Positions 38,659 to 43,886 of a stretch of 64,000 bases of DNA are shown here, in pieces. Below the pieces are notes generated by a model that was not told where the DNA came from, did no database searches, and worked only from the letters and a program-made list of their open reading frames with translations. Both the position numbers and the translations under genes were made by a program. Position 1 is the stretch's first letter. Each line of letters begins with the position of its first letter. The stretch spans positions 332,672 to 396,671 of the forward strand of contig DF236968.1 of assembly GCA_000708835.1 (NCBI GenBank), in the 5' to 3' direction. Origin of the DNA: Klebsormidium nitens. Taxonomy: Eukaryota > Plantae > Klebsormidiophyceae.

Positions 38659-39899
38659 CTTGAAACAGGGACTTCAGGATGTTTCAGATAATCACATCCT
38701 TAGCTACCAAGCCTGCTTCCATGATCTGTACTCGATGTTGGATGTTGAGATTCAGTTGTAACGGCGACGTATAGGATTTGCTTTTAGTGAAAGTTAATTG
38801 ACGAGCTCTAGATCGGAGTCCCAGTGATAGCTTGCGGCATGCACTTGTTGCTCAGACTGATTTTAACGTTGCAAGGTAATCCACAAACATCGAGAGCGTA
38901 GAAAAGTAGCACGGGATCGCGGTCGATCGGATCTCCCGATGTTTTCAGAGCTAGCCTGCGGGATGCCCAGCCATCTGCGGTCGAGCGGAGGACACGCAGA
39001 AACGTGCTTTCTGCTTCAAATGACCATGGGAGCGCCTATAAGTTATTCAATTGCACTATTCCCATTGCATACGTGTACATTCTCAATCATGTGTGTACTG
39101 AATGGCAGGATCGCCGCGTCGAGTATCATAGATATCGATTCCAATATGGTTGTCCGCTGCTGATTAAGGTTGCCGCATGTGCCGCCATGCAATAACATGA
39201 TCTCAGATCTATATGAGCGCAAATGCAATTGTGCAAACTGGCGGCAGCGAAGGACCGCGAGGCCGCCTGGCTCTTCGATCAGAATCTAGACACAAGTCAG
39301 GATCCAAAGAGAATCCAACTGTAGAACGGTCAATCAAGTAGTACCGCCGTACTAGTTCGACCTTCAAAATAGGTAGTGCATGCATATGTGCTTGCAGTGA
39401 TGCATGTGATGCGCGTACATACACGCACCAAGATCGGATAGGTATACATGTCAATTATACAGTAGTCCCGCGCATGCGTGTCATGTGACATGTGTCGGGA
39501 GCTGAGATGCATATGTGCGGCGATGCGCCTCCGTGTACGAGCATCTCAAGGTGCATGAAAATCTAGCTATTTGAACGTGCCCGGGCCCCATACTACGATC
39601 TTCCAGCTCCGAACTGCAGACGGCAACGGCCGGCCTTTTACAGAATTTCTAGCTCGATGCAGAGGAGCTGCGGATTTTAGGTACTGACAGATTCGTGCGC
39701 AATGATCGTCTTACATGCGTTTCGAGAATCATCATGTTCAGGGTCTCTCTGATGTACAGCAGTGTGCGGCACAGACGCCCCTGCGTTTCACCGAGGCACG
39801 AACAGTGAAAATATCGGGCGATCTTAAGCTCGTCAGGCTATCAACGAGTGGAAGGTTGACTTCTGTGATCCAACAGAGGATCTGGAATCACTTTATCGT

Positions 39900-42800
39900 C
39901 TATCCGCCTTCATATGGAGCATCTAAATCAGAGAGTCCCGCATCTTCGAATGCTCGTCGCCGCTGCTTGCACTGCACACAAGCAGTTTAGCGTTGCCCAA
40001 TCAAAATTGACGCCTCGAACCCCCGCTGTACTGGTTCCATGACAAGCTGGAAGGACCAAGCTGACAAAACTGGGCCGCTAAGCACTTCAGCTTCAACAAG
40101 CCTGCCAAAGATCCGGGAGGTCATCATACACGGCCGTTGTCGGCTTGACAGCTCATCGATACATCCCACAATGTCAAGCGCACGAAGGTTTGGCTCGTGG
40201 GACAAGACAGGAGTCCATTGCTCCCTCCGAAATACCTTTCCGCAACGCGCAGAACGACACAGTTTCTGAATGACACTGGCAAAGCAATCCCTCGTAACTG
40301 GAGAAGAGCACGCCACCCGGAGCGTCCCGACCTCGCATGGCTGGCCACTGAAGTATACCAACAACCTTCCTTCTTTCGCAGGATGCACTATTCATAGAAG
40401 AGACATGCAATTGTTAGTTGAGAGACAGGCGGGAGCGGATTCGGCATTCTGAGTAGGTCCCAACCTCTAGACGGACCAGATTCTAACCTGAGAGCACCGT
40501 CCGCAATGCAGCGGCCGTCCGACCATGCAGCTGTAGGAGAGGCGGTACGGGACGCCCGACGAGGCGCCCGACCGGATGACGTCAGCTTTGCTCAGATGAC
40601 TGCGGCGTAAGGAGAGGAAGGTTTAAGCTTCTATTCGCTCGGAAACATTAGCAGAACTCGTTTTTGAGCCTACAAGGAGAAACTCTGCGTGTCTCTCCAC
40701 TGGGCACGGAAGTCGGTTGAGGGGCAACGTCAATAGTTTCCAGGCCCACAAACAGTCCATTGGGGTACTGCAAGGTTGGCCTTGCATCATTCGACCTGGG
40801 ACGATGACTTTGTCAAGCACCTCAAAAGCCCAAAACCTACGATCGAAACACGCGAATAATACTGAATAATACGCTGAACTCAATCCTTTCGTTTTGAATC
40901 TCATTGAGGTTCTGAGGTTCGCTTGAGATTTTGACCTCCTTTGAGGCCTTTTTGACCTTTAAATGACAGAACGAGATTTGCATGCTACAGTGCAAGGTGG
41001 AAGACGTTTCAGGGCCCTTCCAAACTTCACCGCGACAGAGGCGACTCATGAAGTGGTGACATTTCAAGTTAGTTGCAAAGATTATCAGATGCCGTATCAG
41101 GCGACAGACCCCTCTGATTGGGTGACACTAAAAAGACTGAGGGATCAGGATGAGGGTTACGAAAGTTGGGGAGCGGTTACTCACTCCAAGGGCGTCTCAA
41201 CGGATAGAGGGGGAGTCAGAGATGTGGTGAGCCGCCGGAAGTTGGTCAGAAAGTCCTCGGACGAGCTGAACAGGAGGAGGTCAATACGTCGTTACGTAAA
41301 GGGGTGAGGTCGATTCAGAAAGCTTGTCAAAACACATTCATCCACTTTGGGGAAGGTCCGATGTCACCTCTGAAGCCTTTGTAACCTGTCTGCGTCTAAA
41401 ATAAACGGACTGTAGGTGGTCTATTTCAACCCAAAAGCAGTGCTCCCTTACAACACATTTTGAATCTGTGTGTGGGAACCTCCTTTGCAGTACAACAAAC
41501 AGACTGCTGAGGCGGCAACTTTCTCAAGTGTCACAAAGCACAGCTGTGTACTTACCGGTCGAGGATGAGGCTTTCGCGTCGAGCAAGGCGGCTCCTAACA
41601 AGCATGTCCGCAGATGAGTCTCTGAATTGCAATATCCAAAACGATGACTCACCTCGAATAAGACCCGAGGTCCTCCTTGTTCAAGGCCAGCGCCAGAGTG
41701 GGACACCCAACCTGCCAAGTCCAGAGGAGCCCTGAAAAACGGTGTAAGCCCTTGTCCTTTCCAAGTTCGAAGTTGTTCAGCGAACCGACTCCTCTCGACT
41801 TCATGAAATATTCCATCCTTTACCGTTGAACTTGATGCAAAGAGCAAACCGTTGAACTTGATGCAAAAACTAAAGAGCGAGGTACTTCCTTGTATAAACC
41901 AGAGCTGTCTACTTGTCCAGACTCAATCGTGCAAGTGATCAATCGTATCGAGCTCTTGACTATCGTCCAGGCCGCGGGTAGCAGCTCGCCGGGGAGCTCA
42001 TCCAGAACATGGACGAACAGAGTCCTAGTCTTCTTGAGCGCTGACCTGGGTAGCATAGCTAGCTGCAAGGGAGAGCAGGGCCAAGTTCCGGTGAGGGAGA
42101 GGCACGTGCAGCCTGGCCGGAGCCTGGAGTGCTCTGAAGGCCTCCCCTACCTGTACCACGAGACCAGAGGCAATGAAAAGGGTCGAACGTGAACCTGATA
42201 CAACTAGACTACCTCTGATCAAGACTGACAAAGCTCCAAGCGGTGCGCAACACACACGGAACGGCCATCTGACAGAGCGCATTTCAAAGTTTCTTGCAAG
42301 CAGTTTCAGTGTTTGTTCTGAGGATCGCAACCTTGTCATCGAGTCTTGCTAGGGATGGTTATGAGGCAGGTGATCCCAACCTTCGAGATGTCTAACTCTG
42401 CCAGTGACTTCCCCACTGATTCCTAAAGCTGCTGACAGGCTTTCCGTTCCGCATCTGCCCCCTTCTGGCCATAGTCTATGTACCTTCGAAGATGGAGAAG
42501 GATTCATAAAGGAAACAAAAAGCTGGAAGAGCTTTTGACTAAACTAAGCACAGACTACAAACCAGGGGCAATCTCCACAGCACCACAGAACGATGGGGCA
42601 AGCTAACTTCTGTGTAGTGACTGTTTGTGCAACAGCAGGCTGGTTAATTTGATCTACGATTGGAAGCATCTTCCTGCTATACGGTTTGAAAGTACTTCCT
42701 GCTTCTAAACAGAAAAGATGGGGCAGCCTGAGCAACACTGCCCTGTTCTAGAGACCTTCAAAATCTCCTTCGACAGAAAGAAGGACCTTGCAGTTGCACA

Positions 42801-43158
42801 TATCCATGTTGAAGCAGGGAAACTCCGCCAGTACCCAGACAAGTCCCATTGAACTTAAGCTAGAGAGCGCTCACAGAGGCCAGATGGACTTGTCTTTCCA
42901 GAGATAGAGGAGAGTGGCGCTCTCCACACCACCACTTAGAAGCAACACTGACGACCCCTCAAGTGGTGCGCAACCTGTTTGCATTGCTCTGACAGCTGCG
43001 GGGGCACAGTGATCCTTGAAACGAGTCTTGTCTGACGTCCAGCGCTGTAGAGTTTTAAGAATACTGGAGAACAATCCATGCTTGGAAGGTGGTGCAAAGA
43101 GGGAGGTGTTCGTTATGAGTGGGCGCCAAGTTGAGAGTAAGTTTGTGGTCAACTGCAT
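39900..43158 (-). CDS. queC: QueC-like (7-cyano-7-deazaguanine synthase family, PP-loop) protein carrying one in-frame TAG (recoded, recent nonsense allele or sequence error)
   Basis: Exons 42875-43158 (in-frame ATGs also at 43323/43368/43371), 42381-42483, 42046-42150, 41653-41711, 41185-41265, 40488-40599 and 39900-39971, all GT-AG and phase-compatible. Protein: VLLLSGGVESATLL..PLYIDYGQ..ERKACQQL*ESVGKSLAELDIS..HVPLPHRNLALLSLAASYA..ETPLDHLSKADVI..GVPYRLSYSCMVGRPLHCGRCSQCKQRRRAF, i.e. PP-loop, YGQ, PxRN and C-x8-C-x2-C-x2-C. Confidence 0.88.
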
Positions 43159-43886
43159 CGTGGGGATAAATGTTGCTGATGATTGTGTGTGGTGATGTGA
43201 ATTTTGCACTGGAAGACCAGTAAAGTTAATTTGATGATGGTGTTCTCTTTCCAGCCATTTGCCAACTGGTGACAGAGGAAAAGCTTGGACCCGTTCAACG
43301 CTGTTGACCCCATACCGGTGCATTCTGTGAAGCGTCCTGCCTATCTGGGCTGCAATCTCTGCCAGCATCATAAGAGCGGCCTCAAGTAGAATGCTGAGGG
43401 CACTATCCAAATAAAGCCAGCTCTGCTAAGTTCTATCAAAAGAGTCCTTGCACAGACGAAGGAGAAACCCTCGCATGAATGGGCATTGGAAGAGTGATCC
43501 CCTGCATGGCTGGTGCACTGCACTCTCAAGGTGAAAAGCTCAGGAAGCATATATTGCATCTAAAACTGCTTGTATATTGGGTCAGGCGCAGAGTACAAAG
43601 CCCGCCGGAGAATGTATGTGCCGGTCAGTAATACATCTTGAAGGTAGTCCAGACATGTACCCGGTTTGCTTCAATATGCGTCGAGGTACGGGCACAATGA
43701 AGGGGCTGTTATATCAGAAACGTGAGAGCTGTGCACAAGATTTCCCCTTCAAGTTCCACATGATTCCAGGTGGTTTTGCACTTCTGCGCAAACTCTGCAA
43801 GGAAGAAGTAGCGCATTCTTGTAGTGGTGCTCAAGTCCTCCGCTTAGAGCCAGACTTGGAGCCTTCGTTCAATACCTAAAGCCGCC

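Follow-up and report, generated by a model that had tools for sequence, protein, structure and literature searches.

The best-described members of the QueC family (Pfam PF06508) are the canonical QueC enzymes (Escherichia coli b0444; Bacillus subtilis PDB code 3BL5; TIGR00364), which convert 7-carboxy-7-deazaguanine (CDG) to 7-cyano-7-deazaguanine (preQ0) and show linkage to queD/queE of 33% and 26% (PMC13329287, Table S2). Mutagenesis of the E. coli enzyme found Y189A to be inactive, with Tyr189 part of the canonical signature, and Arg99 of the VPxRN motif is essential in canonical QueC (PMC13329287). Other members are Cap9, the protein ligase of the type IV cyclic oligonucleotide-based antiphage signaling system (CBASS; PDB code 9NTO), QatC of the Qat defense system, and the PfkB-linked cluster 4 of a 2026 survey of PF06508 (PMC13329287). 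The same survey concluded that authentic QueC is absent from Eukarya and that eukaryotic sequences in the canonical cluster are contaminants or recent transfers; the eukaryotic sequences it analyzed include no plants, and a Haptolina sequence is present with Physcomitrium patens as its best match (PMC13329287). The subject of this work is a nuclear QueC-family gene of the alga Klebsormidium nitens, located on the minus strand at positions 39900-43371 of a 64,000-nucleotide stretch of contig DF236968.1, termed the window.

The reading preferred here, held at a probability of about 60%, is that the gene belongs to a distinct QueC clade of bacterial origin with likely non-canonical chemistry and that the K. 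nitens copy is freshly non-productive. The clade is a distinct group within PF06508, undescribed so far, with a diagnostic motif set composed of SGG[IV][ED]S, YGQ[RK][AG], VP[LIV]PHRN, Y.S[AS]S, and SC[LM].G. No cluster of the PF06508 survey carries the SGG[IV][ED]S...SC[LM].G set (PMC13329287), and literature searches on QueC or queuosine in mosses, Klebsormidium, and green algae turned up no paper dealing with this clade. Cluster 4 resembles it in that it is proteobacterial, a little shorter than QueC, and equipped with a motif of the YGQ(x)6E type, but has SGGxDS, CH(x)5CxxCxGCxK, and a PfkB neighbor in 89% (PMC13329287), whereas the clade has C-x7-C-x2-C-x2-C and other neighbors.

The K. 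nitens gene is a real, expressed, intron-bearing eukaryotic QueC-family gene of bacterial ancestry. Its public model, KFL_000190610 (P0002, 205 amino acids), was found by a word search from the PP-loop exon and matches PF06508 with 96.5 bits and an E value of 2e-27, passing the gathering threshold of 22 bits; with relatives reaching E values down to 1e-48, the match lies far above chance. The word search also returned two relatives, the called open reading frames (ORFs) of which both end at "...WPL". Protein searches took the exons one by one, with P0002 and intact homologues as proxies for the spliced product, and the single-exon translations gave one weak QueC match of 14.4 bits, the exons being too short. 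An earlier reading made from the sequence alone had proposed a spliceosomal gene of seven exons, and this structure is borne out by splice joints in RNA contigs and by the introns of the P. patens orthologue. Comparison of the P. patens chromosome with a spliced transcript contig shows six introns, and when mapped through the protein alignment all six coincide with those of K. nitens in position and phase (P. patens junctions, with a caret at the splice site: PL^Y phase 2, S(K/A)^VG phase 0, Q^VG phase 0, GSYS plus 2 nt, PL plus 2 nt, and Q^C phase 0). The seven-exon model therefore represents the ancestral streptophyte structure. Its features are as follows.

42875..43371, minus strand: coding part of exon 1, with start ATG at 43371, a leader of ~139 amino acids, and the PP-loop SGGVES at 42936-42919
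42484..42874, minus strand: intron 1, 391 nt, phase 2, donor CT^GTGAGC, acceptor TTCGAAG^G
42381..42483, minus strand: exon 2, (L)YIDYGQKGADAERKACQQL, a stop, then ESVGKSLAELDISK; holds DYGQ, and its downstream donor is RNA-supported
42423..42425, minus strand: in-frame amber codon TAG within exon 2
42151..42380, minus strand: intron 2, 230 nt, phase 0, RNA joint depth 61 and 25.5
42046..42150, minus strand: exon 3, VGEAFRALQAPARLHVPLPHRNLALLSLAASYATQ; holds VP(L)PHRN
41712..42045, minus strand: intron 3, phase 0, with its end placed by homology; in RNA contigs its last nucleotide is 41732
41653..41711, minus strand: exon 4 in its in-frame form, VGCPTLALALNKEDLGSYS plus 2 nt; the RNA-contig form is 41731..41653
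41266..41652, minus strand: intron 4, 387 nt, phase 2, from RNA contigs
41185..41265, minus strand: exon 5, (S)SSEDFLTNFRRLTTSLTPPLSVETPL plus 2 nt; Y.SSS where canonical QueC has YPDC
40600..41184, minus strand: intron 5, 585 nt, phase 2, from RNA contigs
40488..40599, minus strand: exon 6, (D)HLSKADVIRSGASSGVPYRLSYSCMVGRPLHCGRCSQ; holds the conserved Lys and zinc cysteines 1-3
39972..40487, minus strand: intron 6, 516 nt, phase 0, from RNA contigs
39900..39971, minus strand: coding part of exon 7, CKQRRRAFEDAGLSDLDAPYEGG; holds the fourth zinc Cys and the stop TAG at 39902-39900

Exon 1 ends in ...LWKDKSIWP plus CT (phase 2), transcript contigs reach ~43483-43499 upstream of its coding start, and the 3' untranslated region extends to ~39595-39656. 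In the six-frame translation the motifs read SGGVES, YIDYGQ, HVPLPHRN, and SYSCMVGRPLHCGRCSQ^CKQRR, the cysteine cluster being split over exons 6 and 7. The zinc site is CMVGRPLHCGRCSQC; the four cysteines reported from sequence alone are present, and the first spacing is x7 in place of the x8 given there. The PP-loop SGGVES with Glu for Asp is genuine, and it is a trait of the clade: SGG[IV]ES is common to the bacterial relatives and alternates with SGGxDS inside the clade (Asp for example in P0016, P0040, and P0071), and substitution of Glu is therefore probably tolerated. In DYGQ, too, the Asp varies: L002, a contig of the Logan collection from a sister species, has IAYGQ (1399-1512), whereas K. 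nitens, the JGI metagenome contig L001, and most members have I[DN]YGQ. A palindrome, TGACGTCA, lies at 40577-40584 within coding exon 6 (codons K-A-D-V-I), and L001 has GCGGAGGTCATT.

The N-terminal leader described in the sequence-only reading is retained as an extension that is acid-poor and Ser/Thr-rich in algae; its start at ATG 43158 (MQLTT) is not, as that codon is Thr in L002 and the conserved start is ATG 43371. The upstream frame (131 codons before the core) is open in both K. nitens and L002 and does not differ in length between them; its ratio of non-synonymous to synonymous rates (omega) is ~0.49. Algal extensions of 26-139 amino acids occur in K. nitens, L001, L002, P0004, Botryococcus, Micractinium, and P0102, are basic, Ser/Thr/Ala-rich, and acid-poor, and in some cases resemble classic presequences. 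The land-plant and Prymnesium proteins begin 4-6 residues before the PP-loop strand and lack an extension. The extension is real, and in algae its composition is like that of targeting peptides; targeting is plausible. Two short upstream ORFs of 16 codons each (ATG 43486 and 43476) lie at 43476-43499, 5' of the conserved start.

Searches with P0002 and the moss protein P0007 returned homologues from mosses (Ceratodon, Sphagnum, and P. patens), the liverwort Marchantia, the lycophyte Diphasiastrum, the chlorophytes Botryococcus and Micractinium, and the haptophyte Prymnesium, together with about 100 further unnamed or bacterial homologues of 198-235 amino acids (typical length in the clade ~205); no seed-plant homologue turned up in these searches. 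When 185,579 prokaryotic species were scanned, each through a single genome, 176 relatives were confirmed, mostly from Thioalkalivibrio, Acidihalobacter, Thermithiobacillus, Sulfuriferula, Sideroxydans, metagenome-assembled genomes of Burkholderiales, and Sorangium/Polyangiaceae; the bacterial members are Polyangiaceae and sulfur- or iron-oxidizing Gamma- and Betaproteobacteria. A feature search of the ESM Atlas returned generic QueC clusters only. The profile search and phylogeny that had been proposed as a check place the proteins in the QueC family and set the clade apart from canonical QueC with support of 99-100 (Shimodaira-Hasegawa-like approximate likelihood ratio test, SH-aLRT). The green sequences form one group (support 94-98) with a branching order as in the species tree, the haptophyte group joins them (support 87), and the Polyangiaceae are sister (support 94). 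Micractinium and Prymnesium genes carry introns at positions of their own, which marks them as nuclear, and shared introns occur only within streptophytes. The clade is of bacterial origin with an ancient entry into eukaryotes, and inheritance has been vertical within streptophytes, since the seven-exon structure is identical in Klebsormidium and moss. The bacterial ancestry of the supposed domesticated enzyme is upheld; a one-off domestication is not, because the green lineage and haptophytes carry homologues widely, though these are uncharacterized. One of the conditions named in advance as refuting the proposal, that homologues be both characterized and widespread in eukaryotes, thus holds in part.

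The RNA evidence consists of contigs from four public runs from at least three studies (X1, X9, and X20 among them) placed on 39500-43700; assembled contigs lose rare isoforms, and minor productive variants could go unrecorded. Minus-strand GT..AG joints in the contigs show that the runs contain cDNA, and five of the six introns are spliced out, all GT..AG (42380-42151, 42045-41732, 41652-41266, 41184-40600, and 40487-39972), with exon depths of 50-90 in X1. Three anomalies are present. The first is the amber codon at 42425-42423. L001 and L002 have TGC (Cys) here, and Cys is likewise found in land plants and in the majority of bacterial members; contigs from X1, X9, and X20 span the codon with zero letter differences. 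As both relatives encode Cys at this position, the amber codon is the derived state. A non-standard genetic code for TAG was considered and is countered by the other exons, by the relatives, and by the normal TAG terminator of the gene itself.

The second anomaly is intron 1, for which no spliced form was seen among the contigs of the four runs. An X1 contig (42379-43483) crosses it unbroken at exon-level depth (55.9), and an X9 contig has intron 2 spliced out and then runs unbroken over 42379-43499. With the intron retained the ORF stops at a TGA within the GTGAG donor; the 166-amino acid product of this ORF has no match in the contig index. The third is the acceptor of intron 3, which in RNA lies at 41732^41731, 20 nt 5' of the site that homology supports and that keeps the frame, 41712^41711 (...Q^VGCPT), and shifts the frame into a TGA within exon 4; the moss, liverwort, and P0004 proteins read ...Q^VG.. 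at this junction, matching the in-frame acceptor. No productive joint, either with intron 1 removed or with the in-frame exon 4 acceptor, occurs among the contigs of the four runs. Little or no full-length enzyme is therefore probably made from the K. nitens copy, the amber codon, intron 1 retention, and the frame-shifting acceptor all being found in the dominant mRNAs. A minor alternative acceptor of intron 6 at 40101 (X1 only; depth 15.5 versus 56.5) leads to ...HCGRCSQ-AC followed by a stop, and that protein would lack the normal fourth zinc Cys. The public model KFL_000190610 starts at an internal Met and has 26 residues of exon 2 (P0002 ~38-63; window 42352-42543) in the wrong frame, LWPEGGRCGTESLSAALGISGEVTGR, by way of splice sites absent from the RNA contigs, a misreading which removes DYGQ and masks the TAG.

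Over 103 core codons K. nitens and L002 differ with a synonymous rate (dS) of 0.64 and a non-synonymous rate (dN) of 0.05, giving an omega of 0.08; the relaxed selection, with a ratio near 1, that had been named as telling against a functional gene is not what is found. Exon 3 encodes identical protein (100%) in the two with 11 synonymous and 0 non-synonymous differences, and the introns share only 50-56% identity. In L001 all seven exons are open with GT..AG borders. Judged from these substitutions the gene was under strong purifying selection until very recently, and any inactivation is therefore recent or conditional: the lesions are young, strain-level, or tolerated through some conditional mechanism, and the pattern suggests that function was lost very recently or at the level of the strain.

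The fold of the clade is that of QueC. The AlphaFold2 model of the moss orthologue P0007 (mean predicted local distance difference test score 95.8; a moss protein, not the K. nitens product) has a QueC-type Rossmann fold with a C-terminal zinc ribbon, and its best match in the PDB is QueC (PDB code 3bl5; template modeling score 0.77-0.83), followed by Cap9 (PDB code 9nto), with PDB code 2pg3 also at the top. A profile of the clade matches QueC 2pg3 at 1.4e-39, 3bl5 at 2.7e-38, Cap9 at 1.4e-27, and QatC at 1.4e-5. Mapping of the clade members onto E. coli QueC (b0444), the residue numbering of which is used throughout, shows that Tyr35, Gln37, Glu42, Pro97, Arg99, Asn100, Tyr131, Phe138, Lys165, and the four cysteines are retained, so that the clade shares with canonical QueC the position of the PP-loop, the YGQ...E and (V)P.RN motifs, the zinc site, and a length of ~205-230 amino acids. 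Differences occur elsewhere. Asp13 is variable and mostly Glu, and in YxQxHxxE (35-42) the Tyr, Gln, and Glu are kept and His39 is Gly or Ala in every member examined. In YPDC (131-134) Ser, Ala, Thr, or Gly stands in place of Asp133 and Cys134, forming Y(S/P)S(A/S), and Tyr189 is Met or Leu in all members examined. VPxRN (96-100) appears as VPLPHRN, with Pro, Arg, and Asn aligned and one residue inserted, and in the alignment of the clade profile a loop of ~13 residues before this motif is deleted; the first cysteine spacing is x7 against x8. Scores against TIGR00364 are 76.5 bits for P0002 and 105-116 bits for the intact P0004, P0007, P0008, and P0009, all below the cut-off of 150.3.

Gene neighborhoods were scanned at 84 bacterial loci, 76 of them from the clade, with genes taken from calling weighted by G+C at third codon positions and anchored on tblastn. 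QueD or QueE lies within 7 kb at 0 of the 76 clade loci, whereas a neighboring clade outside the family has them at 3 of 4 loci (L083, L087, and L089), which serves as an internal control, and canonical QueC has the linkage of 33% and 26% cited above. The absence of a queD/queE-like gene from the window, noted earlier from the sequence alone, holds in a tblastn search of the 64-kb window with the E. coli QueD and QueE proteins. The commonest bacterial neighbor, at up to 29 loci, is a divergently transcribed module of a 102-amino acid 2Fe-2S-thioredoxin-like protein, a 200-amino acid alpha/beta hydrolase, an ABC ATPase resembling NodI, and an ABC-2 permease, joined at some loci by a MazG-like gene; the pairing could reflect shared synteny or a functional link. 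Examples are L003:3965-7992, L006:2000-4985, and ~27 other loci, many in Beta- and Gammaproteobacteria. The remaining neighbors are housekeeping genes. In loci of the Thioalkalivibrio/Acidihalobacter type a small gene of 82-97 amino acids without a Pfam family lies on the same strand 3' of the QueC-like gene, overlapping it or within 380 nt (L012:7572-7865, L005:8575-8868, and L017:7660-7935).

Taken with the model, these features would make the intact members small zinc-binding PP-loop ATP pyrophosphatases of the QueC fold, predicted to act as ATP-dependent amidoligases: the carboxylate of a small substrate would be adenylated and then transferred to an amine or ammonia. Either that substrate or the second step, in which canonical QueC forms the nitrile, would most likely be other than in the conversion of CDG to preQ0, because His39, Asp133-Cys134, Tyr189, and the 13-residue loop are lost and queD/queE linkage is absent; the clade is probably not a canonical preQ0 synthase. 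The deazaguanine chemistry first proposed for the gene is, on the same grounds, one possibility and not the expectation.

Several points weigh against the combination of non-canonical chemistry and fresh loss. The retained Tyr35, Gln37, Glu42, Arg99-Asn100, Tyr131, Lys165, and zinc site could accommodate CDG or a close analogue as substrate, and the clade may simply be the QueC of its bacterial carriers, if these lack canonical queC. The tree topologies come from quick searches, and SH-aLRT is their only measure of support. Spliced intron 1 or the in-frame acceptor may be present in up to ~1/5 of transcripts, giving a small productive mRNA pool, and the intron 1 splice sites look intact. Polarized by L001, the K. 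nitens branch has three amino acid changes, one of them the Cys-to-stop change, and the L002 branch has seven, so there is no surplus on the former, which fits a functional, conditionally expressed gene.

The alternative that survives best, though unlikely, takes up these last points and holds that the gene still works in K. nitens but is gated, with intron 1 detained and conditionally spliced and the UAG read through. The omega of 0.08 with no surplus of change, transcription at the depths seen in X1, and the intron 1 donor CT^GTGAGC and acceptor ..AAG^G, kept in K. nitens, L001, and L002 at a position common to moss, are all compatible with it, and among bacteria the residue aligned with the TAG is not always Cys. 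However, the stop is derived, with Cys in both relatives; the dominant mRNA carries the frame-shifting acceptor as a third, independent defect; and a productive joint is missing from the contigs of all four runs. The UAG-GAA-UCA context is not known to act as a read-through signal.

It is improbable, to a somewhat greater degree, that the clade consists of genuine preQ0 synthases, providing de novo 7-deazaguanines in green algae, bryophytes, and lycophytes for tRNA queuosine or archaeosine-like products or for DNA modification, possibly in the organelles of algae. QueC is the best match in both sequence and fold, most residues of the ATP and substrate pocket and the four cysteines are retained, and automatic source annotation names the clade proteins 7-cyano-7-deazaguanine synthase. 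The scores nevertheless fall below the TIGR00364 equivalog cut-off, Tyr189, essential in E. coli QueC, is Met or Leu with His39 and Asp133-Cys134 also lost, and QueD and QueE are missing from the 76 bacterial loci and, by tblastn, from the window. The substrate of the eukaryotic tRNA-guanine transglycosylase is queuine, which also counts against this alternative.

A very low probability is given to a Cap9/QatC-like role, in which a deazaguanine-type carboxylate would be attached to the N terminus of a partner protein in immune-type signaling. Cap9 is the second-best match in fold and profile, and like the clade it has a short QueC core and no Tyr after the first zinc Cys; QatC shares the PP-loop and a distant QueC core. 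Cap9 keeps YxDC and adjoins a cGAS/DncV-like nucleotidyltransferase (CD-NTase), however; the clade lacks YxDC, and among the frequent bacterial neighbor clusters that were annotated (not every neighbor) there is no CD-NTase or QatABD, and the common neighbors are the ABC exporter, hydrolase, 2Fe-2S-thioredoxin-like protein, and housekeeping genes. QatC, at ~400 amino acids, has extensions and motifs of its own, and the clade, at ~205, scores a marginal 13-23 bits against its model NF041925 (cut-off 280). The PADLOC QueC model is non-discriminating, giving canonical QueC 99 bits and the clade 68-89 bits. Bacterial contamination or a fortuitous combination of motifs, with nothing in its favor except the bacterial affinity of the family, is ruled out to near certainty by the spliced GT..AG introns in the RNA contigs, the intron positions common to the moss chromosome gene, and the strong homology.

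A QueC-fold enzyme is here encoded by a bona fide nuclear gene with introns conserved from Klebsormidium to mosses, and the clade ranges from chlorophytes to lycophytes and haptophytes. The public K. nitens gene model KFL_000190610 is corrected in the frame of exon 2, revealing the stop codon. A broader proposal, which is doubtful at present, is that a QueC-type amidoligase of ancient bacterial origin, inherited vertically, performs 7-deazapurine or related carboxylate-amide chemistry in green algae, bryophytes, lycophytes, and haptophytes (organellar in algae), with the K. nitens amber codon and detained intron acting as a conditional switch; if true, this eukaryotic 7-deazapurine reading would overturn the view of eukaryotic QueC-type enzymes as mere contaminants or symbiont genes. 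The field gains a defined, uncharacterized clade with diagnostic motifs and tractable models in Physcomitrium and Marchantia.

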